Of a stretch of DNA of 52,830 bases, positions 2,775 through 50,490 are shown piece after piece. This stretch comes from Octopus sinensis. Lineage: Eukaryota. The DNA is taken from the NCBI RefSeq assembly GCF_006345805.1, contig NW_021834295.1, positions 1 to 52,830 on the forward strand, written 5' to 3'. Below the pieces are notes generated by a model. It had not been told where the DNA came from, did not search any database, and saw only the letters and a list, made by a program, of their open reading frames with translations. The stretch's first letter is position 1, and every line of letters starts with the position of its first letter. The position numbers and the translations under genes are program-made.

Positions 2775-3855
2775 ATATGTATGTGTGTATATATGTGTAT
2801 GTATGTGTGTTTGCATGTATGTATGTATGAATCTGTATGTAAGTGCGTATGTATTTATGTATGCATGCATATGTATGTATGTATGTATGTATGCATGTAT
2901 GTTTATATGCATGTATGTATGTATGTATGTTGTATGTATGTATGTATGCATGTATGTTTATATGCATGTATGTATGCATGTATGTATGTATGTATGCATG
3001 TATGTATGCATGTATATATGTATGCATTTATGTATGTGTGTATATGTATGTATGCATGCATATATGTATGTATCTATATATGTATATGTATGTGTGTATG
3101 CACGCATGTATGTATATATATGTATGTATGTGCATGTATATGCAGGCATGCATGCAAGCCTACATGAATATTTGTATGTATATATGTATGTAAGTATACA
3201 TGTCTGTATGTAATTACGTATGCATGCGTGTATGTATGTATATGTGTGTATGTATGTGTGTATGCATGCATGTATGTTTTTGTATAGATGCAAATATTTA
3301 TGGATATATGCATCTATGTATGTATGCATGTATGTATGTATGTATGTATGTACATATGTATGTACGTATGTATTGATGTATGTATCAATGCATGCATGTA
3401 TGTATGTATGTATGATGTATGTTTGCATGTATGTATGTATGTATGTATGTATGTATATATGTATGTTTGTAATTATGTATATATGTATGTAGGAATGTTT
3501 GTATGTATGTATGTGTGTCTCTATGTATGTATGTATGTGTATATATGCCTGCCTGCATGTATGTATGTATGTATGTATGTATGCATATATATATGTATAT
3601 ATGTCTGTATGTCTGTATGTATGTATGTATGTATGTATGTGTGTACGTGTGTATGTATGTATGTATGTATGTTTGTCTGTATGTATGTGTGTATGTATGT
3701 ATTATGTATTATGTATGTATGTATGTATGTATGTAGGCATGTATGTATGTGATATGCCTGCATGCATGTCTGTATGTATGTATGTATCCTCTATGTATGT
3801 ATGTATGTATGTATGTATGTATGTATGTATGTATATATGTATGCTTGCATGCATG
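2775..3855. repeat. (TATG)n compound microsatellite
   Basis: Direct inspection; homologous tract at 1-378. Confidence 0.95.
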
Positions 3856-6069: not shown

Positions 6070-7335
<1,266 letters not shown>

Positions 7336-9294: not shown

Positions 9295-10095
9295 TTATGT
9301 ATATATACATGTAGATATATATATGTATATATATACATGTATGTATGTATGGATGTACGTACGTACGTATGTATGCATGTATGTATGGATGTATGTATGT
9401 AGGTATGTATGTGTGTATGCATGTATGTATGTATGCATGTATGTATGCATGTATATATTTATGTATGCATGTATGTATGTATGTATGTATGTATGTATGC
9501 ATGCATGTATGTATGTATGAATGTATGTATGCACGTATGTATGTATGTATGTATGTATGTACGTACGTATGTATATATGTATGCATGTATGTATGCATAT
9601 GTATGTATGTATGTATGTATATATGTATATATGTATGTATATATGTATGTATGTATGTACGTACGTATGTATATATGTATGTTTGCATGTGTGTATGCAT
9701 GTATGTATGTATATGTATGTATGTATGTATAAATGTATGTATGCATGTATGTATGCATGTGTGCATGTATGTATGTTTGTATGTATGTATGTATATATGG
9801 ATGTATGTACGTACGTATGTTTATATGTATGTATATATATATGTATGTATGTATGCATGTATGTATGCATGTATGTATGCATGTATACATGTATGTATGT
9901 ATGTACGTACGTATGTATATATGTATGTATGTATGTATATATGTATGTATGTATGTATGAATGAATGTATGTATGCACGCATGCATATATGTATGTATGT
10001 ATGTATGTACGAACGTATGTATATATGTATGTATGTATGTATGCATGTATGCATGTATGTATGTATGAATGTACGTATGTATATACGTACGTATG

Positions 10096-10126
<31 letters not shown>

Positions 10127-10797
10127 ATATGTATGTATGTATGTATGAATGTATGTATGCTCGTATGTATGTATGTACGTATGTATGTATGTACGTATGT
10201 ATATATGTATAATTGCATGTATGTATGTATGCATGCATGTATGCATGTATGTATGTATGTACGTACGAACGTATGTATATAGGTATGAATGTATATATGT
10301 ATGCATGTATGTATGTATGTATATATGTATGAATGTATGTATGCATGTATGTATGCATGTGTGCATGTATGTATGTTTGTATGTATGCATGTATGTATGT
10401 ACGTACGTATGTATATATGCATGTATGTATGTATATATGTATATATTTATATATGTATGTATGCATGTATGTATGTATGTATGAATGAATGTATGTATGT
10501 ATGCATGCATGTATGCAGGCATGTATGTATGTATGTATATATGTATGTATGCTTGTATGTATGTATGAATGTATGTATGCATTTATGTATGCATGTATGT
10601 ATGCATGTATGCATGTATGTATGTATGTACGAACGTATGTATATATGTATGTATGCATGTATGTATGTATGTATGAATGTATGTTTGTACGCATGTGTAT
10701 ATATTTATCTATGTATGTATGTATGTATATATGTATGTATGTATGTACGCATGTATGTATGCATGCATACATGTATGTATGTATGTACGTACGTATG

Positions 10798-10828
<31 letters not shown>

Positions 10829-11462
10829 ATATGTATGTATGTATGTATGCATGAATGTATGTATGCATGCATGTATGCACGCATGCATATATGTATGTAT
10901 ATATGAATGTACGAGCGTACGTATATATGTATGTATGTATGTTTGTATGCATGTATGTATGTATGTATGTATGCATGTATGTATGCATGTATGCATGTAT
11001 GTATGTATGTATGTACGTACGTATGCATATATGTATGTATATATATATGTATGTATGCATGTATGTATGTATGTATGAATGAATGTATGTATGTATGCAT
11101 GCACATATGCATGCATGTATGTATGTATGTATGTATATATGTATGTATGTATGAATGTATATATGCATTTATGTATGCATGTATGTATGCATGTATGCAT
11201 GTATATATGTATGTATGTACGAACATATGTATATATGTATGTACGTATGCATGTATGTATGTATGAATGTATGTTTGTACACATGTAAATATGTATGTAT
11301 GTATGTATGTATATATGTATGTATGTATGTATGTACGCATGTATGTATGCATGCATACATGTATGTATGTACGTACGTATGTATATATGTATGTATGTAT
11401 GTATGTATATATTTATGTATGTATGAATGAATGTATGTATGCATGCATGTATGCACGCATGC

Positions 11463-11495
<33 letters not shown>

Positions 11496-11896
11496 CGAAC
11501 GTACGTATATATGTATGTGTGTATGTATGTATGTATGTATGCATGTATGTATGTATGAATGTACGTATGTATGTACGTACGTATGTATATATGTATTATG
11601 TACGTATGTATGTATGTATGTATATATGTATGTATGTATGTATGAATGTATGTATGCACGTATGTATGTATGTATGTATGTATGTATGTATGTATATACG
11701 AACGTATGTATATATGTATGTTTGCATGTATGTATGTATGTATGCATGTATGCATGTATGTATGTATATACGAACGTATGTATATATGTATGCATGTATG
11801 TATGTATGTATGAATGTATGTATGCATGTATGTATGCATGTGTGCATATATGTATGTTTGTATGTATGTATGTATGTATGTATATACGTACGTATG

Positions 11897-11930
<34 letters not shown>

Positions 11931-12200
11931 TGTATGTATGCATGTATGTATGCATGTATGTATGCATGTATACATGTATGTATGTATGTACGTACGTATG
12001 TATATATGTTTGTATGTATGTATATATGTATGTATGTATGTATGAATGAATGTATGTATGCATGCATGTATGCACGCATGCATATATGTATGTATGTATG
12101 TATGTACGAATGTATGTATATATGTATGTACGTATGTATGCATGTATGCATGTATGTATGTATGTATGTATGAATGTACGTATGTATGTACGTACGTATG

Positions 12201-12234
<34 letters not shown>

Positions 12235-12268
12235 TATATGTATGTATGGATGTATGTACGTACGTATG

Positions 12269-12299
<31 letters not shown>

Positions 12300-12965
12300 A
12301 TATGTATGTATGTAGGAATGAATGTATGCATGCATGCATGTATGCACGCATGCATATATGTATGTATGTGTGTACGAACGTATGTGTATATGTATGTATG
12401 TATGTATGCATATATGCATGTATGTATGTATGTATGTATGAATGTACGTATGTATGTACGTACGTATGTATATATGTATTTATGTATGTATGTATGTATG
12501 TATATATGTTTGTATGTATGTATGAATGTATGTATGCTCGAATGTATGTATGTATGTATGTACGTATGTACGTATGTATATATGTATAATTGCATGTATG
12601 TATGTATGTATGCATGCATGTATGCATGTATGTATGTATGTACGAAGCTGTGTATATATGTATGTATATATGTATGCATGTATGTATGTAAGTATATATG
12701 TATGAATGTATGTATGCATGTATGTATGCATGTGTGCATGTATGTATGTTTGTATGTATGTATGTATGTACGTACGTATGTATATATACATGTACGTATG
12801 TATGTATGTATGTGTGTATGTATGTATGCATGTATGTATGCATGGAAACATGTATGTATGTACGTACGTATGTATATATGTATATATGTATGTATGTATG
12901 TATATATGCATGTATGTATGTATGTATGAATGAATATATGTATGCATGCATGTATGCACGCATGC

Positions 12966-12998
<33 letters not shown>

Positions 12999-13528
12999 TG
13001 TATGTATGTACGAACGTATGTATATATGTATGTATGTATGTATGCATGTATGCATGTATGTATGTATGAATGTACGTATGTATGTATATTTGTATGTATG
13101 TATATATGTATGTATGTATGTATGAATGTATGTATGCTCGTATGTATGTATGTATGTATGTATGCACGTACGTATGTATATATGTATAATTCCATGTATG
13201 TATGTATGTATACATGCATGTATGCATGTATGTATGTATGTATGTATGTACGAAAGCATGTATATATGTATGTATGTATATATGTATGCATGTATGTATG
13301 TATGTATGAATGTATGTATGCATGTATGTATGCATGTGTGCATGTATGTATGTTTGTATGTATGTATGTATGTACGTACGTATGTATATATGTATTTATG
13401 TATGTATGTATGTATGCATGTATGTATGTTTGTATGTATGTCTGTATGTATGTATGTTTGTTCGTACGTATGTATATTCGTATGTATGTATGTATGTATG
13501 TACGTACGTTCCTATGTATGTATGTATG

Positions 13529-13560
<32 letters not shown>

Positions 13561-13760
13561 CATGTATGTATGTATATATGTATGTATGCATGTATGTATG
13601 TATGTATATCTGTATGTATGTATGTATGTTTGTAAGCATGTATGTATGTTTGTTCGTACGTATGTGTATTCGTATGTATGTATGTATGTATGTATGTATT
13701 AACGTGCGTGTCTGTATGTATGTATGTATGTATGTATGTATGTATGCATGTACGTATTGT
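9295..13760. repeat. 4.5-kb (TATG)n-based satellite with higher-order structure
   Basis: Units TATG/CATG/TACG/AATG; rare variant words recur at about 600 bp. Confidence 0.95.
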
Positions 13761-19882: not shown

Positions 19883-20100
19883 TTACAAAGAAATTCGATT
19901 GAATTCTGATGATAAACATTCAATTGCACTGAAACAGTCAGTTCTTTCAAGAGCTGCTTTTAATATTCGAAGTGTACGTTTCTCTGGGTCATTGCTTCGA
20001 CACCATTTGAGCAGCATCTGGAAACCTTGTTCCACAACGCTATGAGAATGGTCAAACTTGATGATTTCCAGGTCATGTTGTTTAATTCCTAATTCCCTTC
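19883..20100 (-). CDS. Exon 11, rest of death domain and stop
   Basis: tcttttgcag|GA AGG GAA TTA; [17 protein letters not shown]...[10 protein letters not shown]...LKAALE; TAA at 19885-19883. Confidence 0.9.
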
Positions 20101-23100
20101 CTGCAAAAGAAATAAGAAATAATTGCAACAGCATTAATGATAATATAAAATCTGTATTAATTACGACAAAGAAATTATGTGAATAGAAGAGTGAGAGATA
20201 CTTAAGAAACAGGGAAATTAGAAGACATTGTTATCTATTTCTAAAGATGTTGATAAAAATAGCAAAGAATTTGAAAAAAAGGCTGGAGAAGAAGAAGAAT
20301 ATTTTTAAAAATTAATTGAAAATTACACAAGAGAAAATGCCTGGTGAACAACTGGCAGAAGAAGTGTATGAGAGCCTAAAGAATCAACAAAGACCACCAA
20401 TAGTTAGATAATTTTATCCATCTGTCCATCTTCTCTGGGCTCTATTCATAGGAGAGTTTTAGGGGTAGAGTCTTCAGGCACCTCCTTCATGCAATTCTAT
20501 CAGAAGCAACCTTCATTAGAAGTTCTGAAAGGATTTCCAAACATGACCAATTGAAACTATGGATATCATCCAACCATCTCATTCTTGCTCTACCCCTAGG
20601 TCTCCTGTCGGTTGGCTCAGCTTGAAGAATCCTCTTGTGGTTCTTTCCTGTGACATTTTAATCACATGCCAGAGTACTGGAGCTGTGAATTCTCAATGCA
20701 GAGAAGCAGTCGCTTGACCTGGAGAGACCTCAAATCTCCAGCCTGCACACCTTGTTGAGTAACGTTACTCCAGAGACTCTTTGGGGGAATACAATCGCAG
20801 TCGTTTGATAACACCCTGTGATCAATGCCTGAAATAGTCATTTGTGATGTCTTTCCACCTATGATTAATAGAAATTTCAAAATTATCAACATTTAAAAAT
20901 ATTTCAAAAATAGGGATTGTGAACCTAAATGATTTCAACCACAGAAAGTAAAAATAAAATACTGTTAGGTAAATATCACATATTATAGAGGGCACTGGCT
21001 TAAGGTTTTTGGATTCATGACTTATAACAAGAACTTCTTTCACTGGATCAAGGCCACAATTTCAAAGTATTTAATACAGGAGAGGCCTTAGCAATGAGAA
21101 GAGTTTTAGTTTGTAGGCAATAAGACAAGAATCACCAACATCTACGCCATACACCTACAACACTTGGGTCCTGAAAGAATCACTGCATCCACAAACAAGC
21201 AAGTTTACAGGGAGGGCAGGTTAAGGTTAGGGAAGGACTTTGTAAGTAGCAGATATACAGGAATAGTTTGTAGTAGGAACAAGTAATAAAGACATAGTTG
21301 ATAGTTTCTGTTACCTAAGAGACAGAATTAGAAGTGGAGGAGACTATTCTGAAAGCACAGTAGTTAGAAGGAAAATGAGATGAAAAATGTACAGGGAGCT
21401 GTTAGGTCTACTGGCAACTAAGGGATTCTGTCTCCAAATGAAGGAGAGATTGCAATGTTACATGGAATGTGGAGGATGCGTGGAAACTGGCAGGAAATGA
21501 GATGAGCACACATCACTAAATGTGTAATGTTAATGTGTTGAAAATGTGGAGCCAAAAAACTGGGTCTCAGAAGAATCTGTGATAGTGTACAAGAAAAAAG
21601 ATAATGGTATAGATATAGAAGGGACATGGAGGATGAAATTTGGATAAAGAAATGCCTGGAAATCAAGTTGAAGGAAACAAGCGATCAAACTGGACAAAGG
21701 ACCACAACGACTCTGGGAGAAATCGTCTGACCATTACAAACTTAGAAAAATGGATGTAAGGTGATGATGATAATGGACCTGGTGTTAGTGGATTGATTTT
21801 TGCCCAGTATATGACTGGTACATTTTGTATGACTCCCCAAGATATAGCAAGCTGACAATGTTGTAGATGATGTCCATTCTTAATTTAGATAAGTCATTTC
21901 TGAGTGCGAACTTCCATGCTACATGGCAGTGAAACATGGGCCATGACTGCTGAGGACATGTTGGACATGAGAAGCATTAAACATGGTGTGCAAGAGAGAT
22001 GACTACGCTGGTATGGTCATGTGTTACGTATGGATGAGGACAACTGTGTGAAGAAGTGCCACTTCCTAACTGTAGAAGGAACCTGTAGAAGAGGTATATC
22101 CAGGAAGACATGGGATGAGATGATGAAGCATGGCCTTCGAACATTGGGCCTCACAGGGGCAATGACAGGAGACCAAGATTTGGGAAATATGCTGTGATTG
22201 AGAAAACCCGGCAACTAAAATGAGATCGTAGCCATGGCCAATGCCAGTGTTGTATGTCCGGCCCATTTAAGAGCACCCTCGATGCATTGGGTGATATGAT
22301 ATGCTTGAGAAGACCTGTTGAGTCAAGTAAAACCAAAATTGCAGCTGTGGCCAGTGCCCCCTGACTAGCCCTCGTTCTGGTGGCACATGAAAGCCATCAT
22401 CTGAATGTAGTCAATGCCAGTGTGATCTGACTGACTCCATGTGCTGGTGGCACGTAAAAAGGACCATCCAAATATGATCGATGCCAGGACCACCTGACTG
22501 ACTTCCATGCTGGCGGCACATAAAAAGCACCCACTACACACTCAGAGCGGTTGGCATTAGGAAGGGCATCCAGCTGTAGAAACACTACCAGATCAGATTG
22601 GAGCCTGGTGCAGCCATTGGCTCTCCAGACTTCAGTCAAACCGTCCAACTCATACCAGCATGGAAAATGGATGTCAAATGATGATGATGATGATTTATAT
22701 CAGCTGACTCAGAGGATATTATCATGATCTCTTGAGTCAAGTCTAGTCCCCAGTATAGCTCAAAAGTGCTTGAAAAGATGTTTCTCTATGCTGCAGTCTA
22801 TCTAGATGTATATAGGTACCATAGGGAGGTAGAAGACATTGCTGTAAATAATAGTATAAATGATATTTTATGTTGTTAAACTGTCAGACAAGGGGAAATG
22901 GGATATTGTGATGTTCATGCCTTTCCATGTGACATTTGTAATGTAAAGGAGAGTGAAATGATTTCAATTGAGAAACAAAATTGAGTTGAGTTTGAATTTT
23001 CTGTTGAGATTCTTTTTTTGTAATATAAGAGAGTGTTTCATTAACTTACAATGCTGAGTTCAATCCAGCCATGAACACAATCGACAATGGGGCCTGTCTT

Positions 23101-26100
23101 CTATAGAGACAGGAAATATATTTTGACCTGGGACTAAAGAATTACAATAAATATAGAAAAACACAGATTGGCCAGGGGAGAGACGACATGTCCCACACAA
23201 TGCACACTCTCATGTTAAAAAGTTTGCATTTGATAATGTGGTCCTCTTCACCCAAGAGAAAACATGATGGCACATCTGGAACCCTTTCCCCTTAATTCTG
23301 CCAGATTAAGGGAGATATCTGCCTCAACCTACCAGTAAAATTACTAAAAGTGTAAACAAGCAAAAACATTGTCATTAATTCACCTGTTTACTCTTAAATG
23401 ACAATATTTTTGAGTCCCCTTTTACAAATGACAGTATTAACTCTACTGGACCTTCTAATTTATACATTTTACAACCGTGCTGACGTCCGAAGATATTTTA
23501 TGAAATTTCAGTGATAGCTTTACTTTATAGCTAAACTTTCAATTGGAAATTAGGAATGGAACCGGTTCTCAGTCATTCAAACAAACAGAAGTTTAGCTGA
23601 AAGCAAAATTTATAGAAATTAATTGGGTATTTTATACTCACCAAGTTCCTGCCATTTACCTGCCAACTTTTGGGACACCCTATGAAGATGAATCTCCTCT
23701 ACCGTTACAGAATCTGAAATAAATATTTCCAAATTTTACACTTCATAGCACAATTTCCCTATCTCTGTTAATGGTTTATATTTTATTATTGTAAGACATT
23801 CCTATCATCAATGGACAACTGCTGACCACTATAGGTTTGGTTGATAGTTTTATACTTTCTACCGTGGTCTTATATAATGGCTCAATATTTAGGCCCATAA
23901 TAAAATAGACTGACCTTCCTAAGCCTCCTTTTTCTCTTAAGACATCCTACTTAATCTAACAATGTTGCAATCATCTTATTTAATGATCACATGTATCTCT
24001 TGTATCCATGCTAAACCTATGACATGGCATTGTCCCCTCACCACTGGACTTCACTAATCAACATTCCCCTCTTCTTTTGCTTAATTCTGATGTCAACCAA
24101 GCTGGTCATCAACGACCTTGACACAAACTCATGTCACAGCTGTTATCTTTGTCAAACTTTGCTGCTTTTAATCTTTAATTTTAAACTATGCAACTCAAAG
24201 TTCACCAGAATTTCATCTGATACAGGAAATATCTAAAGACACCTTAATGAAATAGTTTCCTTTCCTGATGAGCAATGATTAGTTCTACACAGGTAAAACA
24301 GAAAGTGATAACAAGTATCCTAAAACTGTATACTTGCACAAAACATCTTAAATGAAACACAAATGTTCATACACCGATTATTGCAAAGGAAAAATATCTG
24401 AAATGGTATATAAGAAATGATATTCAAGAATATATAATCAAGGTGGTGATATAGAAAACAATGAGATGAGAGAAAAGTGAATGTGTCTCATTATGGGGAG
24501 AGAATCGTTTCAGGATTTATATTTTATCTTTTTTTCTATATTTTCCTTATCGTGAGGGACCTTTTTCCTATGTCTCATGATTCCATATTTCGATAAAAAT
24601 CCCTTTATTGTATATTCTTGCATTTGTAGGTAGTGAATAGAATTAATTTTATCACTAACCATTTGAAAGAAATGTAAGAATGGAACCTGTTCTCAGTCAT
24701 TCACACAAATAATATATTTCAGGTGAAGGTAAAATTTATAGAAATTTATTACAGTTATTTTATACTCACCAACAGACTCTACAACCGCCTTGACTGCTTT
24801 CTCTTTACACTTTGGACACACTGAAATAAGAATTGGAAATTAAGAATGGAACCTGTTCTCAGACATTCACACAAATAATATATTTCAGGTGAAGGTAAAA
24901 TTTATAGAAATTTATTACTGTTATTTTATACTCACCAACAGACTCTACAACCGCCTGGACTGCTTTCTCTTCAGACTTTGGACACACTGAAAAAAGAATT
25001 GGAAATTAAGAATGGAACCTGTTCTCAGTCATTCACACAAATAATATATTTCAGGTGAAGGTAAAATTTATAGAAATCAATTACAGTTATTTTATACTCA
25101 CCAACAGACTCTACAACCGCCTGGACTGCTTTCTCTTCAGACTTTGGACACACTGAAAAAAGAATTGGAAATTAAGAATGGAACCTGTTCTCAGACATTC
25201 ACACAAATAATATATCTCAGGTGAAGGTAAAATTTATAGAAATTTATTACAGTTATTTTATACTCACCAACAGACTCTACAACCGCCTGGACTGCTTTCT
25301 CTTCAGACTTTGGACACTCTGAAATAAGAATTGGAAATTAAAAATGGAACCTGTTCTCAGACATTCACACAAATAATATATTTCAGGTGAAAGTAAAATT
25401 TATAGAAATCAATTACAGTTATTTTATACTCACCAACAGACTCTGCAACTGCCTGGGCTGCTTCTTCTTCAAACTTTGGACACACTGAAATAAGCATTTC
25501 AAAGTTTTATACTTCATAGTAAAATTTGTTTGTCTCTTTTAATAATCTATATTCCATTATTGTAAGGCATTCATATCCTCAATAGTCAATTGGTGACCAC
25601 TATGCTTTCGGTCAACACTTTCTAAGCTGTTACTATATAATAGTTCAATATTTAGAACCACAACAAAATAGGCAAACCTTTCTAAATCTCATCTTTCTCT
25701 TAAGACATCCTATATACTAATCTAACAATTCTGAAATTCTCTCACTTAGTAATCACTTCATAACACTCTTTTTCTCTTAGTTTTGTTGTTTCTTTCTTAT
25801 GTCTTTGCTAGACAAGTTTAACGCAAAATTTCACATTGGTTATTTGTTCCTGCCCATTAGAAAATTGCAGACTACAGCCTACAAATGACCACAAAAGCAC
25901 AAATTTCACAACTTTTGAAGTAAACGCAGTGGTGTCACCCAGCACACTGCCTCATGAAAGTCATTGCTAGCTCTCACTGTGCGCGCAACGGTGTGCTGCC
26001 ATCTGTTGGCATGCTACAGAACTAGTCCGTGAACTTTCTGATACTACCTTGGAGCAATGACCAGGCTTCATGTTCGAATTAAAACGAATCAACTCAAAAG

Positions 26101-29100
26101 TAAAGCCAAAAGGTGAAAGAGTCAGAAAACAATGTCTCTTTTAGCATTAATCACATCTAAAAACTAACGAGTGTGAGTATAAAATGTCTAAAAGGATGGC
26201 AAACATTATCATCATCATTTAGCGTCCGCTTTCCATGCTAGCATGGGTTGGACGGTTCAACTGGGTTCTGTGAAGCCAGAAGGCTGCATCAGGCCCAGTC
26301 TGATCTGGCAGTGTTTCTACGGCTGGATGCCCTTCCTAACGCCAACAACTCTGTGAGTGTAGTGGGTGCTTTTTACGTGCCACCGGCATGGGGGCCAGGC
26401 AAGGCTGGCAACGGCCTCGATCAGATGGTGCTTTTTATGTGCCACCGGCACGGAGGCCAGGCGAGGCTGGCAACGGCCACGAATGGATGGTGCTTTTTAC
26501 GTGCCACCGGCACGGAGGCCAGTCGGGGCGGCACTGGCAACGGCCACAATCGGATGGTTTGCTTACTTGTCACCGGCACTGGTATCACAGCTGCAATTTC
26601 CATTGATGTTGATCGACTTCGATTTTGGTTCTGCTTTCTGATATCTGATTTGATTTGGTTTGATTTTGATTTTGATTTTCACTTGCCTCAACGGGTCTTC
26701 ACAAGTGGAGTTTTGTGTCCCAAGAAGGAAAGGTATGTATAAGTCGACTGGCTACATACAAGGTAGAGGCCACGGGTTATGGTCTCACTAGTCTTGCTGG
26801 GCCTTCTCACGCACAGCATACTTCCACAGGTCTCGGTCTCTAGTCATTTCCTTGGTGAGACCTAAAGTTTGAAGGTCGTGCTTCACCACCTCGTCCCAGG
26901 TTTTCCTGGGTCTACCTCTTCCACAGGTTCCCTCAACCGCTAGGGTATGGCACTTTTGCACACAACTATCTTCAGCCATTCTCGTCACATGACCATACCA
27001 GCGCAAACGTCTCTCTTGCACACCACAACTGATGCTTCTTAGGTACAACATTTCTCTCAAGGTACTGACACTCTGTCGGGTATGAACACTGACATTACAC
27101 ATCCATAGGAGCATACTGGCTTCATTTCTTGCGAGCTTACGCATATCCTCAGCAGTCACGGCCCATGTTTCACTACCATGTAGCATGGCTGTTCGTACAC
27201 ATGCATCATACAGTCTGCCTTTTACTCTGAGCGAGAGGCCTTTTGTCACCAGCAGGGGTAAGAGCTTTCTGAACTTAACCCAGGCTATTTTTACTTTAGC
27301 AGTTACACTTTCAGCACACCCACCCCCGCTACTGACTTGGTCAACTAGGTAGCGGAAGCTATCCACTACTTCTAGTTTTTCTACCTGGAACGTGGTAGAA
27401 GTTAGTCTCTGCACATTTTCAGTGTTTATTGCTCCTGAGCATCTGCCACAAACAAAAACTATTTTCCTAGTTAGCCTTCCTTTGACATTGCTGCACCTCT
27501 TATGTGTCCATAGCTTACACTTGGTGCATCTTATAGAGTTTCTACCTACACCTTTTCTACAGATCAAGCAGGGCCATCTACCTGAAGGCGTTTGTGATTG
27601 GTCTACCTTCCTACTTATTAGGACTTTGGTTTTGGCTAGGTTGATTCTAAGGCCCTTCGATTCTAATCCTTGCTTCCACACCTGAAACTTCTCCTCCAGT
27701 TCTGATAGTGACTCAGCAATTAGAGCAAGGTCATCAGCATAGAGGAGCTCCCAGGGGCATCCTGTCTTGAATTCCTCCGTTATTGCCTGGAGGACTATGA
27801 TAAATAGGAGGGGACTAAGGACTGAACCTTGGTGGACCCCAACCTCTACCCTGAATTCTTCACTGTACTCGTTGCCAACCCTCACCTTACTAGCAGCATC
27901 TCTGTACATGGCTTGTACAGCTCTCACTAACCATTCATCTATCCCTAGTTTCCTCATTGACCACCAGATAAGGGATCGGGGGACCCTGTCGAAGGCTTTC
28001 TCCATGTCAACAAAAGCCAGGTACAGGGGCTTATCTTTAGCTAGGTATTTCTCCTGCAGCTGTCTTACCAGGAATACAGCATCAGTGGTACTTTTCCCTG
28101 GCACGAACCCAAACTGCATCTCATCTAAGCTAACTCTCTCTCTAATTAGTTGGGCTATAACCCTCTCCGTAACCTTCATTACCTGATCCAGCAGCTTGAT
28201 ACACCTGTAGTTATTTGTATCTAGGGCATCACCTTTACCTTTGTAGCAGTTGACTATTATGCTGCTACACCAGTCATTGGGTATGACTCCTTCGTGTATC
28301 ACCTGGTAAACTATACGGGTGACTAGGCTATAGCCGACACTACCAGATATTTTGAGCATCTCTGCAGTAATTTCTGATGGGCCTGGGGCTTTCCCTGTCT
28401 TCATGCTTGTAATTGCCTTAACTACTAAGGAACTGTCAACTCGGATTGCTGGTCCCCCTGTTGGGTTGACATTCGGCAGACTCTCTTTATCCCATTCATT
28501 TTCCTCATTCAGCAACCTTTCATAGTGGCGTCTCCAAACCTCTCTCTTTGCATCCTCATTTAGCGCAAGTGAACCGTCATCCTTTCGAACACATTTCTCT
28601 CCTACGACATCACGATTCTCTCTCACACACTGTCTTGCAACACGAAATACCTCAAGTCTTTCATTCTCATGGCGCAGAACATTGGAAAAGTTTTTTCTTA
28701 TCTGCTTCCCCTCTGGCTAAATACACCTGCCTCCTAGCTTCCCTTCTGGCAGTCTGATACACTTCCCTGCTACCACCGTTCTTCCAGTACTTCCAAGCCT
28801 GTTTCTTTTGTCTAATAGCCCTGTCAACAATATTTTTCCACCACCACGTTATTTTGGGTCTTGAGGGGACTTTGTACCAGCCACAGATCTGGTCAGTGGC
28901 TTTCAGCAGGTTGTCCCTTAAAAGCGTCCAGTTGTCTTCTACCCCATGTGAAGCTATACCCCCTTCTATTTCGTCAAAGACTTCAAGTAACATATCTCTA
29001 AATCTCTGTCCATTCGCAGTGTTAATCATATATAGTTACAAAGAAGGAGTTGCATGTCTCCACTACAATATGAAGTGCATTATTCCATACCAGAAAGTTA

Positions 29101-32100
29101 ATGAGACAACAGACAGATCAAGAAAGAATGTTCTTACCAAATCCACTTTTGCTGCGTATGTGTTGTCGACATATGGGGCATTGCTTAAATGTCATTTGAG
29201 AACAGCAATTCTGACAAATAACAGTATGTTGACATGGATGGAGTGTGACAGTAGCCTTTTTCTCTTGACAAAACCAACACCTGTGGAACAAAATATTAAC
29301 ACATCCCATCATTAACATTCATTTATAATAAAATATTTCGTTGTGGACATGTTTAGAGTACAGAATATTAAGGGGCACAACAGTAACCAACAAGAGTAAA
29401 TCGTAAATTCTTCTGTAAACAATTACATACAAGCAGATTTGTGTGTATACAAGTGTCACATTAACATACACATACAAGGGTGGGCTGAAAATATCAAAGG
29501 CTGACTAAGGTGCAGCCTTCCAACATGCCATCCCAGTCAAACAGTCCAACCCATGCCAGCATAGACAACAGACGTTAAATGATGATGATGATGATGACAT
29601 ACACATTGTTAGTGTGTGTTTTAGGTTATTTTCACATGAAAGCGTACATGACAACTGATTGAGTCAGAGAAGAGAGAGAGAGAAAAAAATTGTTGGTAGA
29701 CAGATAAATCCTATTTACTTCTAAATAGCAATTTCAAAATGTGTTCATTCACTTTATTATTTAGTACTACATTTTCATGGAGGTCACCGAACTCTAAAAT
29801 AGTCAGGGATGGATGGTGAGGTATATCTGTCAACACAAGCAATCATGTGAATGTCATCAAAATAGTGTTTTTCGTTTGATCCACTAACAACTGTATTTTC
29901 TGTTTATTGTTCTTATTATTGTTGTGTGGTCTTAAGGCTGCAAGCTGGCAGAATCATTAGCACACGGAGCAAAATGCTTTCTGGCATTTCGTCTGCCTTT
30001 ACATGCTGAGTTCAAATTCAGCTGCGGTTGACTTTACCTTGCTGTTGATAAAATAAGTACCAGTTGAAAACTGGGGCTGTTGTAATTGACTTATCCCCTC
30101 CCTGACCTTGCTGGCCTTGTGCCAGAATTGGAAATCATTATTGTTGTCTTGAGTCAAGACACTAATGACGGAATAATACATTGGGAGAATTCAAACTAAA
30201 TAAACATATAAACATGATTATATACAAAAGAGAAAATGTCCTGGTTTATCTTGGCGTTGCCAGTGAGTACTTACAGTGATTGTAAAAATGTTTTTAATTT
30301 TTCTTTCAAATGTTGATTTTCTATGCAGTCCAATGGGGTCACTTTCTTCTTCTTATTACGATGATATAAGCTGGCTCCTTGGCTGGCAAGGTAACTCAAA
30401 ACTACTATTCCAGAGAGCCTCCTATCCATGTCCAGTTGGAGCTCTCTGCAGCACTGCAAATGATGAAATATAAAACGATGAGTAGAATATTACACAAATA
30501 TATATTGTAGATAAACAAATCATGTCAAATGTAGGAAATATAATGGAACAAGTATCACAAATAACAGAACACAACAAACCAACAAGAACCTATCTTTACA
30601 ACTGGCTTGATAAAGCCAACTGGCCATAACAAAAGAAATACTTATGGAAGAGTATTGTATATATAAATATAACACAACAACATAACAACAAACAATGGCA
30701 AGCTACATTTTGTTACACAAAGGCCATTCTAATTACCATGGGGGTCGTCTGATGGTCTATGGTCACTCAAGATTTTCTGTAATTCCTTATGGAGATTTAA
30801 ACTGGTCGCAACAAGAAGTATTTTTTTAGCAACATATATACTCCTACTTGAATTTGTTTACCATCTGCAAAACTGCCATCAAAACTCAGATTTTTGACAT
30901 CTTCAGATCTGCATCTATGAAAGCAGTCACCCATATTTTCCTACTGGTAATTTCGATAATCCAAATATTGATTGGGAAACGTTTCACTGGTCACAAAGTG
31001 CAACTCATTTCCATAACAACAAACAATGAACAGAGAACACCAAGAACATAATAATTTCTTCAGACACAGCAACAAAACCAACACCAGACAGACATATCCA
31101 AGCATATCAATAATGTTTCCAAAATTTATAAAGAAACATTTTTGGCTGATGTTTGAAGTAAAGGAAGTAAGGATTGGTGTGGTGGTTGAGGCAACACACC
31201 AACACATTATAGTCAAGAAATTGTTGAAACTGTTAGTCTGATAGACAATTCCTATAATAATGGGTCGTTGACTGCTAGAGTAGCTTCTTCTCACCAAAGA
31301 AGACATTACAACAATACATAGGTGACCATTAACTGTCTGAAATACAGTCACACATATTTGGGAATCAAAGAGTTGCTTAAATTCTGCAACAACAGACAAT
31401 AGACACCATCAGATCTAGCAGTGGATAGATGCTGAGGTCTTTCAAACAAACACACACACACACACACATATGTATATATATATATATATATGCACCTAGA
31501 AGTAGTTGATAGCTACTGTTATCTAGGTAATCAAGTCAGTAGTGGAGGTGGATGTGCCAAGAGCATAGTTGCTAGAATAAGATTAAGCAGGGCAAAGTTC
31601 AGAGAGCTTCTATCTTTGTTGGTAACAAAGGGCCTCTATGACTATCTGTCTAGTTACATCGTCATACATACAATCTCGTGGCATTACAATTTTGTGCACA
31701 CATCTTAATGTAAATTCATTCTCATCACATCTCCCTTCATTACAATCATTGCAAGGGGTATTACTGTAGTCAATATACACACAAAGTCCAAGCCCTGGCA
31801 ATATTTGGAATCCTAATTATCAACTTTGAATAAACTCAGTTATATATTCATTATCATACTGATAAAAGAAACTTTCTTCGAAGTCCATGAATATATTTTC
31901 TTTAAATTTAATTGTCCATAAACGAATTTATTTTCCTTTTCCTTTCTTTGAAAATGATTAATGAAATATGCTTTCTAGCAATTAACACAGTTCAACTCGT
32001 TTAACTTGAAATTCGATATTTAAAACAGTTTGTGAATTTCTCTTTCTTAAATTTAAAGACTTATATCTGTCGTTGGTCACCTCTCCTTCATACAGTGATG

Positions 32101-34893
32101 GCAGTGTTTACATGACACATATTTAAGACGGGTTACCTTCTTTACAGTGGAGTGGCCATGCTTTTGAAGGTGAAAGAAGATGGAATATTGTTACATCATT
32201 TTACATTCGTTTTCTATGCTGGCATGGGTTGGATAGTTTGGCAGAAGCTGGGCAGCTGCAGAGCTGCTCAGGCACCAATTGCCAGTTTTGGCATAGTCTC
32301 TGCGGTTGCATGCCCTTCCTAATGCCAACCACACACACACATATTCACAAACAATTTTTAAAACTTACCTCATCTAAAATGGGAATGGGTTCCACCTCAG
32401 AATGGAACATCTCTTTTTTTATTATTGAGAGGTGCAAACAATTATTGCCATCATTGTTGACAGCATTTATGTTTGCACCATTTATAATAAGTTTATGGAT
32501 TATTCCGAGGTGGGCCCTGGACACGGCTTCCATCAATGGTGTCATTTTCTTATGATTCTCGATATCCAGTTTCACTGAATCCTTTGTGGAAGTAAAAATA
32601 GAAATTGAAAATGTACATGGGATATGTGTAAGGGACATGATAAATCTATTAAGAGGTCTTAAACAGATTGTTTCAGCCTAATCTATATTTATCTCTCACT
32701 ATAGTAAATTTTAGGGGAGCAGAACAAGAGTGAACATATAATTAGCAGATCAAAACTAGTAAAGAAGAATTATGATGTTGCTATATTAATAGGGGTTCAT
32801 AAACAGGTGAGTTGGTTAGTGTCCACATCCTTAACATTCCTGTACATACACACACATATACATGAATGTTATGGAAGTGAGATACACACAAACACATATA
32901 TATATATATAGATATATTTACACACACACACCATATATATATATATATATATACAGGAGTGGCTGTGGTAAATAGCTTGCTTACAAACCACATGATTCCG
33001 GGTTTAGTTCCACTGCATGGCACCTTGAGCAAGTGTCTTGTACTATTATCTCGGGCTGACCAAAGCCTTGTGAGTGGATTTGGTAGACAAAACTGAAAGA
33101 AGCCCTCGTATATGTGTGTGTGTGTTGTGTTATGGAAGTGAGATACACACACACACACACACACATATATATACAGGAGTGGCTATGGTAAATAGCTTGC
33201 TTACCAACTACATGATTTCGGGTTCAGTCCCACTGCATGGCACCTTGAGCAAGTGTCTTGTACTATCATCTCAGGCTGACCAAAGCCTTGTGAGTGGATT
33301 TGGTAGACAAAAACTGAAAGAAGCCCATCGTATATGTCTGTGTTTGTCCTCCCAACATTGCTTAACAATCGATGCTGGTGTGTTTGCATCCCTGTAAGCT
33401 AGCGATTTGGCAAAAAGGATCAACAGAATAAGTACTAGGCTTACATAGAATAAGTCCTGGACTCGATTACATGTTGTGGCGAGAGTCACAAGAACCCATG
33501 CAAGAACAGACTTGACTGAACGACTATGAATAGTAGCAGTCTGAGTGAGAGACCAGAGAGAGTAGGTGTTAATTGCAGGAAGTCGTAAGGTGTTGTTTTC
33601 ATTGTTTGTTGGTTTGTGTATGGATTGTTGTTGTTACCCTGATCCGTAATATGTTTTATTGTTACTACAAGGTTATAGTATAAACAGTATCGTGTCATAA
33701 TAATTGGTGATACAATCCCAATACATTCATACATAAAAATATACACATATATCATCATCATCATCGTTTAACGTCCGCTTTCCATGCTAGCATGGGTTGG
33801 ACGGTTCAACTGGGGTCTGGCAAGCCCGAAGGCTGCACCAGGCCAGTCAGATCTGGCAGTGTTTCTACAGCTGGATGCCCTTCCTAACGCCAACGACTCC
33901 GAGAGTGTAGTGGGTGATTTTATGTGCCACCGACACAGGTGCCAGACGAGGCTGGCAGACGGCCACGCTTGGATGGTGTTTTTATGTGCCACCGACATAG
34001 GTGCCAGACGAGGCTGGCAGACAGCCACGCTCGGATGGTGTCTTTTTTATGTGCCACCGACACAGGTGCCAAACGAGGCTGGCGAACGGCCACGATCGGA
34101 TGGTGTTTGTTACGTGCCCACAGCACGGAGGCCAGTCGATGCGGTACTGGCTACGGCCACGTTCGGATGGTTTTCTTGTGTGCCACCGGCACTGGTACCA
34201 CAAGGATACAAATTCCATTGATGTTCATCTAGTTTGATTTGATTGATTTGATTTGATTTGATTATATATATATACTAGCAGTATCGCCCGGCGTTGCTCA
34301 GGTTTGTAAGGGAAATAACTATAAAGCATTTTTAGAGAGTTATAGCCAAAAAATGGAAAAAAATATGGTAAATTTTTTTTTGAGAGTTAAAAAAGGATTG
34401 AGTTGCGTCCCCTAGACAGTTTGTGGTTCGTGTTTCTGATTCTCGACCCCATGTCGAATTTATCGATTTTTTTCAGAACTGGGGGAACTTTTCAAAATTT
34501 TGGCTGCGTTAGTTTTGAATTATGACATTGGGCTATGTGTGTGTCAAGTTTCATCAGAATCGGTTGAAAGCCGTGGTCAGGGTGAGGGTACGAGAAAACA
34601 GACACACAGAAACACGCACAGACAAACTGCCGTTTATATATAGATATATATATATATATATATATATATACTGAGATTCAGTAAATAGTATTTTATACAT
34701 AAATATAAGAGGGAACCACTATGTGGAAGCCGTTGCGCTAAAAAGAGATCCACATAGGTCTCAACCACTAAGAATTGATCTCTAGAAAATCATTTACTGA
34801 ATCTCAGTTTTTTATACGCTAGACCACTGGTCTTAAATTGATGTTATTAAATTAATATCCAATCTTTCACACACATTTTGATTTTAATTTTAA

Positions 34894-38156: not shown

Positions 38157-41100
38157 AACATTTTATAATTATATACATAATTATAACACATGTACTGTGT
38201 TTTTCTCGGAGAATTAATGGTGGTAATAGTGTCTTTCGATGTCTATTTTTCAGTGCGTGGTGAGGAGCAAGCCAAGCCCTTGTTATAATTATGTATATAA
38301 TTATAAAATGTTTATAAAAATTTACTTATGAGGTTATATTTCCGCGCTGACCACTTGGTAAAAATCATTTCTGATTTTACCCTTTAATATCGCATCAAGT
38401 GGCTTCTAGCAGCAGAAGCCTGAACTTCAATGGCCTTGCCCTACAGAAACGTTTCCGGCCACTTTTGGGTACCCCCTCATATATTCGATATACTCTCTAC
38501 ATTATAGACCAACGATATATATACACACCTGAATAAACACGGCAATCTATATATGGTATGATGAACAACTGTTATATAGCCATGAAATTTAGGATGGGGA
38601 GAGGCATTAATGTGGATTATAAGGACCCCAGTACATGACTGGTATTGTACTTTATTAGCCTAGCAAAGATGGAAAGACAAGGTGACCTCAGCGGGATTTG
38701 AACTCTGAACATAAAGTGTGGTAAATAAATACCACAAGGTATTTTGCCCAACAGCAATCAGACACAAAAACAAGAGAAAAGAGGGAGGACAATTTATTAA
38801 ATGAACCCCTGGATATTACTGGTACAGATTTTCACTCCAGGTTGTTAATAAATACTCTGGCAGGATTTGAACTTGGAACATAAACAGATCAAACTAAACA
38901 CTTTAAGGGAATGATTCTGTATTTAGCCCAGGGTCAGAGGAAAGAGGAAAATTACAAGAGAGAGGGGGTGAGGTGTTTTATATGGAATGAAAAGAAGAAA
39001 AGGAAAGATTTGAACTTGTAACGTTGAGGTAACGAAGGATGAGATGAAGTAAAGAATCTAGTCAGGTAACAACAGCAACAATAATAATTATGATGATTAA
39101 TTAATGAAGTAGGTTACAGTGTCATTAGAGTGTGAGAGAGAGAGTTGAAGCACGACGTCCCATGGTGGGATTATGACATGAATGACTCAAAACAAGAAAA
39201 CAAACGTTAATGAAAACATTAAAGAAACAGATTTGGATAATCCAAATCCATTGGGGACTTACTTTTGAACTGCCAGATGGAGAGGAGTGTCACCATCATT
39301 GTCCGCTTTATTGGCATCGATGCCATTTTGTTGTAGGAGGAGTTTAGCTGTGTCTGTGTGTCCATTCTGACAGGCAAGATGGAGAGGTGTATGACCACTG
39401 TTGATCACCACCCTCACATCAGTGCCATTCTGTTGTAGGAGAAGTTTAGCTGTGTCTGTGTGTCCATTATACGAGGCAAGATGGAGAGGTGTATGACCAC
39501 TGTTGATCACCACCCTCACATCAGCGCCATCTTGTTGTAGGAGAAGTTTAGCTGTGTCTGTGTGTCCATAATACGAGGCAAGATGGAGAGGTGTATGACC
39601 ACTGTTGATCACCACCCTCACATCAGCGCCATCTTGTTGTAGGAGAAGTTTAGCTGTGTCTGTGTGTCCATTCTGACAGGCAAGATGTAGAGGTGTCCGA
39701 CCATCGTTGGTCACCACCCTCACATCAGTGCCATTCTGTTGTAGGAGGAGTTTAGCTGTGTCTGTGTGTCCATTATACGAGGCAAGATGGAGAGGTGTCC
39801 AACCATCGTTGATCACCACCCTCACATCAGCGCCATCTTGTTGTAGGAGGAGTTTAGCTGTGTCTGTGTGTCCATTATACGAGGCATGATGTAGAGGTGT
39901 CCAACCATCGTTGTCCACCACCCTCACATCAGTGCCATCTTGTTGTAGGAGAAGTTTAGCTGTGTCTGTGTGTCCATTGATAGAGGCAAGATGTAGAGGT
40001 GTCCAACCATCGTTGTCCACCACCCTCACATCAGTGCCATCTTGTTGTAGGAGAAGTTTAGCTGTGTCTGTGTGTCCATAATTAGAGGCAAGATGTAGAG
40101 GTGTCCAACCTTTAATATTTCGCTGAGTGACCTAAAAAAGATAAACAATAAAGACATTAAAGATGGCGTCAAGTGGATGGGGGGGGGCAGCGCAAAAATG
40201 AAAAATTTCAAAAAAAGAGAAAGAATCAGATTAATAAACAGGTGGAATGAATTTGGAGAGGAGTAAATAAATGAGGTTCATATCTTACCTGTACCCACAG
40301 ACACACACATATATATATATATACATATAAACACTCACACACATATATATATACACTCTCACGCAAGGAAATGAGCAACTTTCGAAAGAGTCCCCCCACC
40401 AATTTGTTTATTTAAAAAATTTTTTTGCCAAAAAACCCCGATTTCGGACACGGAGGTTCGGGAAAATTGCCAAAAAATCGGCAGTGGAATTTCCACCCCC
40501 TCCAAAATTCTTCAACTTTGACTTTTTTCCCCCAACACTAACCCTAACCCCAACTACAGAAATGTTTTGAAATTTTTGTCCGAATCATCATCTCCGTATT
40601 TTTCCGCATATTCTTAAAAAAAAATTGTGAAAAAAGTAAAGAATGAAGGAAATGGGGGTGGGGGTAATTTTAAAATGCCGATTTTTGCCAATTTTTACCA
40701 ATTTTTTTGCAGATTCGTATTTCCCTTAACCGAAAAGCGGGATTTGTGTCGGGGAAAAAAATTTAAAGAAAGGGTGGGTCTTTTTTAGGAAACGAAATTT
40801 GGGGCACTAAACTGTATGTATACATCATATACATATAACACACACATACATATATATACATATCTATATACACAAATATAATTGTATTCGCTAACCTGTA
40901 AAATGTTATTTCCTTTGCTACTTAACAGGACTTTGACTACATCTTCATAGTTCTTCCTCACAGCCAGATGTAGAGGTGTGTTGCCGTCTGAGTCCTGCTT
41001 ATTAACATTTGCTCCCCTGGAAACTAAGGAGGCCACTGCATCAATTTTACGGCTGAAAGGAAGAAAAAAACATAAAACATCACAGACATTCACTTAACAG

Positions 41101-50169: not shown

Positions 50170-50490
50170 GCTTCCTTTCAGCACGTAAAAAGCACCATCC
50201 GAACGTTGCCGATTGCCGTGCCGCTTTGACTGGCTTCTGTGCCGGTGGCACGTAAAAAGCACCAACCGATTGTTGCCGCTGCGAGCCCCGCTGGCACCTG
50301 TGCCGGCGGCACGAAAAAAGCACCCACTACACTCACAGAGTGGTTGGCGTTAGGAAGGTCATCCACCTGTAGAAACACTGCCAGATCAGACTGGAGCCTG
50401 GTGCAGCCTCCTGGCTTTCCAGGCCCCGGTCAAACTGTCCAACCCGTGCTAGCACGGAAAACGGACGTTAAACGATGATGATAATGATGA
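50170..50490 (+). mobile_element. RTE 3' UTR/tail fragment
   Basis: Reverse complement of the 26208-26600 type sequence with (GAT)n tail. Confidence 0.8.

Follow-up and report, generated by a model that had tools for sequence, protein, structure and literature searches.

The window analysed here, a stretch of 52,830 nt from Octopus sinensis, carries on its minus strand an Octopus gene whose product has ankyrin repeats and one MIB/IAP-type RING, followed by a linker and a death domain (DD). The RING and the DD are separated by a tandem array that is likely made of real, frame-preserving cassette exons, derived from tandem duplication and included in variable number in the product (Table 1). 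The array belongs to a known class, that of tandem exon duplications giving rise to frame-preserving cassette exons, and involves no new mechanism. A literature search found no paper describing either the ankyrin-RING-death-domain family or the cassette array.

Table 1. Features of the ankyrin-RING-death-domain gene and of its cassette array in the window, in the direction of transcription (slashes mark exon borders; in the net charges the junction codon is counted)
Feature	Coordinates	Strand	Evidence and remarks
Ankyrin-repeat exon	39262..40131	-	Pfam Ank_2, 424 bits; collinear with the orthologous loci L001 and L002
Two upstream coding exons (last ankyrin repeat and linker to RING)	~32369-32584, ~30274-30456 (within 30274..32584)	-	tblastn, 88-97% to P0001 and P0003; Pfam Ank
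RING (zf-C3HC4_3) exon, 143 nt	29138..29280	-	donor GGA TTT G/gtaaga, phase 1; Pfam PF13920
Tandem array, 5.0 copies of a 166-bp unit (51-nt exon and 115-nt intron)	24669..25498	.	Tandem Repeats Finder
Cassette exon 1, starts (V), net charge -3	25434..25484	-	sequence
Cassette exon 2, starts (E), net charge -2	25268..25318	-	sequence; identical to one of the cassettes of O. vulgaris model P0004
Cassette exon 3, starts (V), net charge -1	25102..25152	-	100% tblastn identity to P0004 residues 22-38
Cassette exon 4, starts (V), net charge -1	24936..24986	-	identical to exon 3
Cassette exon 5, starts (V), net charge +2, CPxC motif	24770..24820	-	sequence
Segment around the helix-1 exon, paralogous to 25329-25756 around cassette 1	23541..23990	-	footprint of the founding duplication; blastn
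DD helix-1 exon, 72 nt, phase 1-1, encodes (D)...(G)	23642..23713	-	tblastn, 80% to P0001 and P0004; splice sites tttcag/ATTCTG...CTTG/gtgagtat
Terminal DD exon (helices 2-6 and stop codon)	19883..20100	-	acceptor ttttgcag/GA (then AGG), phase 1

The array is very regular, with 95% matches and zero indels at a period of 166. On the minus strand all five units display a polypyrimidine (T/C-rich) tract ending in TTTCAG, 51 nt and a GTGAGT donor, an arrangement already described in the earlier note and borne out by Tandem Repeats Finder and by the sequence itself. The five cassette peptides listed there match exactly, and so do the 115-nt introns from cassette to cassette and the stop-free exons in phase 1-1, which fit the RING donor and the DD acceptor. 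The cassettes are open in this phase only. Their products follow a 17-residue consensus, [V/E]-C-P-K-x-x-E-[K/E]-A-x-x-A-V-x-E-S-V. The gradient from acidic to basic modules and the single CxxC, which had been considered features of the array, are indeed found here but are specific to this locus, being absent from the O. vulgaris orthologue. Cassette exon 5 has 88% identity to cassette VCPKCEEKAVKTVVESV of O. sinensis LOC115225502, and the best match of cassette exon 1 is not in its own orthologues but in locus L003, with the cassette that comes first in the O. vulgaris paralogues.

The RING, the five cassettes and the terminal DD can be translated together without a stop codon, although this is weak evidence by itself since each exon is short and the five copies do not count as independent. 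In a scan of the 52.8-kb window, covering both strands, we looked for pyrimidine-rich YAG acceptors with a GTRAGT donor 30-150 nt further on, where the intervening length is a multiple of 3 and the 1-1 frame is open. Four sites and no others pass, all of them cassettes, with cassette 1 falling just under the pyrimidine threshold. The splice pattern of the cassettes is not due to chance. We also considered a non-coding intronic minisatellite, and rejected it since the unit holds a complete exon that is homologous to the coding sequence of annotated proteins. The cassette array alone matched no Pfam family.

The domains on both sides of the array are recognizable. The RING exon scores 41.8 bits with PF13920 (cut-off 27, profile positions 3-48 of 49), has the Cys/His ligands and shows 89-96% identity with the RING in annotated proteins of Octopus. 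At the other end, the terminal DD exon alone reaches 21.9 bits with Pfam Death, for which the cut-off is 22.6 (profile 23-79), but when the 72-nt exon that lies downstream of the array and ahead of the terminal DD exon is added the match to Death (PF00531) amounts to 34.5-35.8 bits (profile 3-79 of 86). This exon, missed in the earlier note, provides helix 1, and leaving it out truncates the DD. Of the proposed splicing from the array to the terminal DD acceptor the phase was correct, as the RING donor, the cassettes, the helix-1 exon and the terminal DD acceptor are all in phase 1, but not the direct partner; the array is most likely spliced to the helix-1 exon. We also observed that the ankyrin-repeat exon contains an in-frame tandem array of its own, with 7.7 copies of a 102-bp repeat.

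We rejected an orthology of the gene with Mind bomb (MIB1/MIB2), whose members have N-terminal MIB/HERC2 and ZZ domains and two or three RINGs at the C-terminus, as a relative of 750 aa (P0016) has only ankyrin repeats, one RING and Death by Pfam. The translated C-terminal part of the window gene likewise has a single RING. The “MIB2-like” names found among these proteins come from automatic annotation and are no sign of orthology. The similarity to MIB1/MIB2 and cIAP proteins consists of ankyrin repeats and a C-terminal zf-C3HC4_3 RING, together with the presence of a death-fold and a RING in one chain, as in cIAP1. In cIAP1 the death-fold is a CARD, and its arrangement with respect to the RING controls ligase activity (CARD-RING autoinhibition). 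The full-length octopus relatives are different in that they have neither MIB/HERC2 nor ZZ, contain one RING and carry the DD C-terminal to it. MIB1/MIB2 and cIAP-type RING E3 ligases act in death-receptor signalling (for MIB2, PMC7815719).

The helix-1 exon is also the probable ancestor of the cassettes, to judge from its alignment with them. Over ca. 400 bp, the sequence of cassette 1 with its flanks can be aligned to that of the helix-1 exon with its own, with a gap of 21 nt in the cassette, and the alignment of helix-1 and cassette segments has a mean column identity of 81% with the same 21-column gap. Across loci, helix-1-type and cassette-type segments are 70-72% identical (blastn), and elsewhere in the window the 166-bp unit is matched only beside the helix-1 exon. 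An origin from a dispersed repeat or transposon was rejected because the matches of the unit are limited to the array and to the introns adjoining helix-1-type exons. The helix-1 exon was duplicated together with at least ca. 350 bp of flanking intron, the duplicate lost 21 nt to become a 51-nt exon in phase 1-1, and the 166-bp unit was then amplified in tandem, presumably by unequal crossing-over, to give the five copies found here. The array represents an intermediate stage in the birth of a cassette array, which goes from a parental domain exon to a shortened copy and from there to amplification.

Copy number differs between genomes and loci. To the five units of the window correspond five in the orthologous locus of O. 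vulgaris (L001, array at 10000-10826, ca. 96% identity) and four in that of O. sinensis (L002, 20534-21181, also ca. 96%), these two loci being ca. 96-97% identical to each other, and there are two units in each of two paralogues. The cassettes change rapidly from one species or paralogue to another, in number as well as in sequence. Even at 36-50% identity, diverged paralogues retain a repeat with a period of 17-18 between the RING and the DD.

The cassette exons had been described as hidden in the earlier note, but they are already in the public annotations of sister species, since gene models of O. sinensis, O. vulgaris and O. bimaculoides carry from 0 to 6 cassettes per product. Its proposal of a variable number of frame-preserving cassettes between RING and DD fares better, and is supported by the isoforms of the relatives and by the differences in copy number. 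The RefSeq isoforms of the O. sinensis orthologue contain the first and the last unit (X1, 312 aa), the last one only (X2, 295 aa) or the first one only (X3, 295 aa); the corresponding proteins have both units (XP_029656407) or one unit or the other (XP_029656409 and XP_029656408). For the paralogue LOC115225502 the annotation lists at least eight different products, formed from combinations of four cassettes with one 72-nt exon, and another O. sinensis gene has products with two, one and no cassettes (XP_036355693, XP_036355701 and XP_029656757, with 455, 438 and 421 aa). There are four cassettes in the O. vulgaris model CAI9744111 and six in CAI9744105, and in O. bimaculoides we found differences of 17-18 residues between isoforms, for XP_014776758, XP_014776763 and XP_014768682 against XP_052833829. 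Isoforms with 0, 1, 2, 3 or 4 cassettes mean that the exons are not mutually exclusive, and a cluster of the Dscam/ATE1 type was rejected on the range of cassettes carried by annotated relatives. Used alone as a protein query, the cassettes retrieved two annotated proteins only, none of them derived from a transcriptome.

Since every unit combines an open frame with a GTGAGT donor and a strong acceptor, any subset of cassettes could be spliced in frame between the RING and helix-1 exons. Each cassette included would add a 17-residue module, probably a Cys-Pro break and, after it, a short amphipathic helix with homology to helix 1 of the DD, and variable inclusion would generate RING-DD linkers differing in steps of 17 residues, in charge and in cysteine content. 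At the window locus, it is the gene models of relatives that point to such variable inclusion, and the length of the linker may in turn affect E3 ligase or DD function. The earlier note had suggested a structure prediction of the linker. AlphaFold2, run on the RING, the five cassettes and the DD with a 15-row alignment (mean pLDDT 47.8), does give one helix per cassette, but with pLDDT below 50, a hint at most. At the RNA level, the fold of two units in a row is less stable than that of shuffled controls (z = +1.71), and for this reason a mechanism based on competing docking/selector structures was rejected.

For the analysis of variation we compared 16 units, setting aside two error-laden units of O. 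sinensis. The splice sites and the first ca. 10 intron bases past the donor are near-invariant (one GTGAGT/GTAAGT difference), while the exon interior varies, with 20 variable columns, and the cassette exons are 3-6 times more variable than the introns between them. CpG decay seems insufficient to account for so many columns, as we count one or two CpG per exon by reading the aligned units. Purifying selection on the cassettes was not found (pN/pS 1.0, with exons varying more than introns), and the whole 3′ half of the gene has a pN/pS of about 0.93-0.98. In addition, L001, L002 and L003 contain frame-shifting units of 49, 50 and 52 nt, with one to two such units in the orthologous arrays. Together with the pN/pS of 1.0 they suggest either a weak constraint on single cassettes or indel errors in the assemblies. 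The latter may be the case, as these are ONT/PacBio assemblies and the defects fall in homopolymers or are accompanied by many 1-bp indels in the introns.

These data could be taken to mean that the units, though descended from a real exon, are pseudo-exons in decay inside an intronic minisatellite, which have kept splice-like signals only through their youth and whose inclusion would be splicing noise yielding little or no functional protein. The pN/pS values, the excess of exon variability and the frame-shifting units are all in line with it. We nevertheless regard this as distinctly improbable, as open coding arrays with a period of 17-18 persist in O. bimaculoides and in the diverged paralogues mentioned above, the five units of the window are all intact with near-invariant splice sites, and the defective units found elsewhere are possibly sequencing errors. 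A different objection is that the cassettes are real but constitutive here, lengthening the linker by 85 residues, so that the relevant variation would be germline copy number (an exon-containing VNTR) and not splicing. We consider it unlikely, although there is something to be said for it. Skipping is not predicted by anything in the sequence, since the splice sites are near-identical and of equal strength in all five units and the introns measure 115 nt throughout; in CAI9744111 no intact unit of the orthologous array is left out; and copy number varies across species and paralogues. Besides, junctions can be mis-assigned in spliced alignments of short reads when units are as similar as these (95-100% identity), and hence some of the annotated skipping isoforms may be artefacts. 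However, what sets the RefSeq isoforms apart, in the O. sinensis orthologue as well as in several paralogues, is exactly whether single cassettes are present, and some of the junctions join exons that can be told apart, e.g., RING to cassette c as opposed to RING to cassette a, or RING to helix 1 directly.

The most radical objection would be that the cassettes in public models are themselves an artefact, produced by propagation of protein homology and ab initio prediction over a repeat. The O. vulgaris annotation did draw on ab initio predictions and on alignments of proteins in addition to transcript data (PMC10700109), and several models read into the intron, with “...GEYKITV...” tails. Even so, we find it extremely improbable, given that two independent pipelines (NCBI Gnomon and CNAG EVM/PASA) arrived at the same exon boundaries in three species, and that neither the anatomy of the splice signals nor the homology to a genuine DD exon hinges on any annotation. 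Moreover, to our knowledge Gnomon issues alternative isoforms only when there is alignment support. We retain cassette exons included in variable number as the likely explanation of the array.

Tandem exon duplication was reportedly recognized as a source of alternatively spliced exons by Kondrashov and Koonin in 2001 and by Letunic, Copley and Bork in 2002. The array shares with such cases the adjacent homologous exons, the local duplication, the conservation of splice sites and phase and the alternative use, but most known examples are mutually exclusive pairs, whereas here there are at least five near-identical copies in a minisatellite with an exon-plus-intron unit of 166 bp, and their use appears additive in the models of relatives. 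The exons of titin PEVK, the FNIII repeats A-D of tenascin-C and the variable exons of CD44 are combinatorial in-frame cassettes that alter the length or composition between domains. They are like the octopus exons in forming in-frame cassette arrays between functional domains, but they are old and diverged and their tissue regulation has been demonstrated, while the octopus array is 95% identical between copies and made of very small exons of 51 nt. In human LPA, the kringle IV-2 unit is 5.5 kb long and contains two constitutively spliced exons coding for a whole domain. There too the repeat unit comprises exon and intron, the frame is kept and a fast evolution of copy number sets the length of the protein; the octopus unit differs in its 166 bp and 17 residues and in its optional inclusion in the models of relatives. 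Tandem arrays of duplicated exons that generate isoform diversity from one locus are shared as well with the mutually exclusive exon clusters of Dscam1 and chelicerate Dscam (PMC4835542) and of ATE1 (PMC7797038). The formation of alternative exons by tandem duplication has also been treated elsewhere (PMC8373072).

Among these systems the octopus array is an unusually young and clean tandem exon amplification, with a minisatellite-like unit of which each copy in the window is a usable in-frame exon, and it ties germline copy-number change to splicing-level variation in one linker. For genome annotation, it illustrates that repeat masking of intronic minisatellites can conceal coding exons and that short-read junctions inside such arrays are ambiguous. 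A more daring idea, to which we give little credence, is that the array is a fast-evolving diversity module of an Octopus-specific E3 family involved in innate immunity or cell death. “Spare” copies of DD helix 1 would be diversified by combinatorial splicing together with germline turnover, the latter through gene conversion and unequal crossing-over among units and paralogues, and diversifying selection on these helices would be what makes the exons more variable than the introns. The helices might serve, for example, as decoys or as alternatives to helix 1, retuning RING autoinhibition or the pairing between DDs, and the CPxC cassettes would bring zinc-binding or redox-sensitive sites. Returning to the cassette exons as such, their significance for cephalopod biology is that they flag a lineage-expanded family of ankyrin-RING-death-domain proteins whose pN/pS is about 1, as in many immune-type families.

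On the minus strand, all five 166-bp units of the array (5.0 copies, 95% matches and no indels by Tandem Repeats Finder) carry a pyrimidine tract ending in TTTCAG, 51 nt of exon and a GTGAGT donor, as an earlier note made from the sequence had described. The introns from one cassette to the next are 115 nt long, and phase 1-1 is the sole frame open across the five cassettes, each of which encodes 17 residues counting the junction codon. The peptides listed in that note match the encoded ones exactly, its intron length and stop-free phase are borne out, and so is the shift from acidic to basic along this array, with net charges of -3, -2, -1, -1 and +2 (junction codon counted). A scan of both strands across the whole window, which required a pyrimidine-rich YAG acceptor, a GTRAGT donor 30-150 nt downstream, a length that is a multiple of 3 and an open phase 1-1 frame, returned just four sites. 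Every one is a cassette, so chance does not account for the array. The animal DNA of the window is AT-rich, with abundant microsatellites that include very long (TATG)n tracts, the largest of 4.4 kb (ca. 1,100 copies) and several more dispersed downstream of the gene.

Coordinates of the features discussed in the window and in the related loci
Feature	Locus	Position	Strand	Remarks
Array of 166-bp units	window	24669-25498		
Cassette exons 1-5	window	25434-25484, 25268-25318, 25102-25152, 24936-24986, 24770-24820	minus	acceptor, donor and open frame
Ankyrin-repeat exons	window	ca. 44.7 kb, 41.0 kb, 39.3-40.1 kb, 32.4-32.6 kb, 30.3-30.5 kb	minus	
102-bp ankyrin array	window	39321-40110		7.7 copies
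102-bp ankyrin array	L002	7211-7898		6.7 copies
RING exon	window	29138-29280	minus	phase 1 donor
72-nt exon	window	23642-23713	minus	phase 1-1; peptide starts (D), ends (G)
Terminal exon	window	19883-20100	minus	
3' half of the gene	window	19883-32584		
Cassette units	L001	10000-10826		
Cassette units	L002	20534-21181		
Cassette units	L003	31720-32020, 102271-102570		
Extra 72-nt exons	L003	32356-32427, 102909-102980		
Non-LTR retrotransposon	window	26210-29017		host-gene orientation
Reverse transcriptase ORF	window	26788-28626	minus	612 aa
Element with 62-65-bp repeat	window	26365-26522, 33913-34200, 22397-22648, 50181-50429		
(TATG)n microsatellites	window	9296-13757, 3-382, 2776-3858, 6071-6461		

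Along the minus strand the gene runs from the ankyrin exons through the RING exon, the array and a 72-nt exon to the terminal exon. In the spliced product Pfam recognizes zf-C3HC4_3 at 41.8 bits and Death at 34.5 bits (profile positions 3-78), while the terminal exon by itself covers only Death positions 23-79, at 21.9 bits, below the cut-off of 22.6. Since the start of the profile is missing from the terminal exon, the 72-nt exon encodes death-domain (DD) helix 1 as well as the beginning of helix 2. This helix-1 exon shares its phase with the last cassette and is likely its splice partner; the layout first proposed, with RING and DD on either side of the array, holds, although it had overlooked this exon. 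Automatic names notwithstanding, the gene is not a Mind bomb orthologue, because Pfam found no MIB/HERC2 or ZZ domain and no second RING, either in its C-terminal part or in a 750-aa relative (P0016). The gene contains a second coding repeat, in which 102-bp units, each encoding a 34-residue ankyrin repeat, are arrayed in tandem and in frame within one exon; their copy number varies between the window and the O. sinensis orthologue. The intron that separates the RING exon from the array holds a 2.8-kb non-LTR retrotransposon fragment with an intact reverse transcriptase ORF (Pfam RVT_1, 113 bits). Both orthologous loci (O. vulgaris and O. sinensis) lack it and show the empty site, which indicates a recent, lineage-specific insertion. 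A dispersed element with an internal 62-65-bp tandem repeat (GGTGCTTTTTACGTGCCACCGGCACGG...) has copies in the window and in both orthologous loci.

Are the cassettes used? Annotated Octopus proteins that contain them were recovered when proteins were searched with the hypothetical RING-cassettes-DD product. Two loci are collinear with the window at ca. 96% identity and orthologous: O. vulgaris OX597842.1 (L001) has five units, one of them with 49 nt, and O. sinensis VCDQ01005283.1 (L002) has four, two of which have numerous 1-bp indels, in the intron as well as the exon, that are probably assembly errors. In RefSeq the latter gene has one isoform with both intact units (312 aa) and two that keep just the last or just the first (295 aa each). 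The products of O. sinensis LOC115225502 (366, 349, 342, 332, 332, 325, 315 and 315 aa) combine four cassettes and one 72-nt exon in different ways, and a further O. sinensis gene has 2, 1 or 0 cassettes in isoforms of 455, 438 and 421 aa, the helix-1 exon directly following RING in the shortest. Isoforms of O. bimaculoides genes, with strongly diverged cassettes that lack the cysteine, differ by 17, 18 and 35 residues; O. vulgaris CAI9744105 has six cassettes. Two annotated models, P0009 and P0016, join RING straight to the terminal exon, giving a truncated DD. Two annotation pipelines, independent of each other, produced these gene models in three species, and the O. vulgaris annotation drew on Iso-Seq, RNA-seq, ab initio predictions and protein alignments (PMC10700109). 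Models of relatives that differ by single cassettes are indirect evidence, not reads, of the variable inclusion that had been proposed, and they support the cassettes as real, optionally used exons. They can hardly be called hidden, as public annotations of sister species already include them.

Among 1.84 billion representative proteins, HMMER found 42 relatives at E <= 1e-10. All matches with a RING or repeat linker whose source was looked up were from Octopus; the two non-Octopus matches checked, lower in the list, were both from amphioxus (Branchiostoma belcheri). Another O. vulgaris locus (L003, OX597842.1:19.227-19.347 Mb) holds two paralogues in tandem, ca. 70 kb apart, each with two units, and the P0016 model appears to merge parts of both. 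The same chromosome encodes five near-identical "ankyrin-3-like isoform X6" proteins, which together with the tandem pair indicates that the family has expanded tandemly.

As to their origin, the region of cassette 1 can be aligned with that of the helix-1 exon over ca. 400 bp; the alignment takes in ca. 275 bp of intron upstream, the exon itself and ca. 60 bp of downstream intron, which opens with GTGAGTATAAAATA in both. The cassette sequence shows a gap of 21 columns close to its 3' end, and its 17-residue peptide aligns with that of the helix-1 exon (the paralogue counterpart is ETPKLEEKCLQDVAKLL). It follows from this homology that the cassette derives from the helix-1 exon by duplication and shortening, and that it was amplified later as a 166-bp exon-plus-intron unit. 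A dispersed element as the source of the unit was ruled out by homology search. Both O. vulgaris paralogues have an extra 72-nt exon encoding ESLNLEENRSHSTSKKVAVKQQQV, a degenerate duplicate of the helix-1 exon, optionally included in annotated isoforms (e.g., the O. sinensis LOC115225502 proteins); the intron downstream of it is 82% identical to the cassette intron.

We compared 16 units from the four loci. Variable columns numbered 20 in the 51-nt exon vs. 15 in the 115-nt intron (Fisher p = 3e-4), and mean pairwise difference was 0.134 in the exon, 0.042 in the downstream and 0.021 in the upstream intron part, which makes variability within a unit 3-6 times higher in the exon than in the intron. 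This excess may reflect diversifying selection or homogenisation of the introns. Among distinct cassettes pN/pS was 1.0, with synonymous sites elevated too; the 3' half of the gene gave ca. 0.93-0.98 between the orthologues, and in this comparison the helix-1 exon shows 7.5 non-synonymous vs. 0.5 synonymous differences, indicating fast protein evolution or relaxed constraint. With values close to 1 in both comparisons, the cassette sequences show no trace of purifying selection. Exon length, frame and splice signals are kept, as is a loose motif (C-P near the start, E at 7, V at 13, E-S at 15-16), and the splice sites and first intron bases past the donor are almost invariant in the 16 units. 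The first cassette of the window is closer to that of the distant paralogues than to that of the orthologues, even though all five sequences share nearly identical flanking introns, a mosaic that speaks for gene conversion in short tracts or a shuffling of units. Models P0010, P0053 and P0094 (O. bimaculoides and other family members) read past the cassette donor and end in "...GEYKIT...", revealing that the first ca. 17-20 intron bases (GTGAGTATAAAATAAC...) are conserved even where the cassettes of paralogues have diverged strongly; this stretch could be a splicing control element.

The array is a case of tandem exon duplication giving frame-preserving cassette exons, a known kind; a literature search found no description of this array or family. 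Unlike the usual mutually exclusive exon pairs, the octopus cassettes are used additively, judging from the annotated models, and folding of the array units revealed no RNA structure for a regulated mutually exclusive choice. The arrays of titin PEVK and CD44 variable exons are old, whereas this one is very young and minisatellite-like. It resembles LPA KIV-2 as an exon-containing VNTR, but on a far smaller scale and with splicing that is optional in the annotated models. The original reading is supported, with corrections on gene structure, cassette origin and relatives.

Any subset of the five cassettes can be spliced in frame from the RING exon to the helix-1 exon, and relatives are annotated with such subsets at this position. 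The structure prediction of the linker that the earlier note had suggested gave one helix per cassette (AlphaFold), at pLDDT below 50. Each cassette would supply a Cys-Pro break together with a short amphipathic helix, and its inclusion would therefore alter the RING-DD linker in length, by steps of 17 residues, and in charge and cysteine content. In the RING ligase cIAP1, a neighbouring death-fold domain controls RING activity. By analogy, we speculate that in these octopus proteins linker length may tune the coupling of DD-mediated recruitment to ubiquitin transfer.
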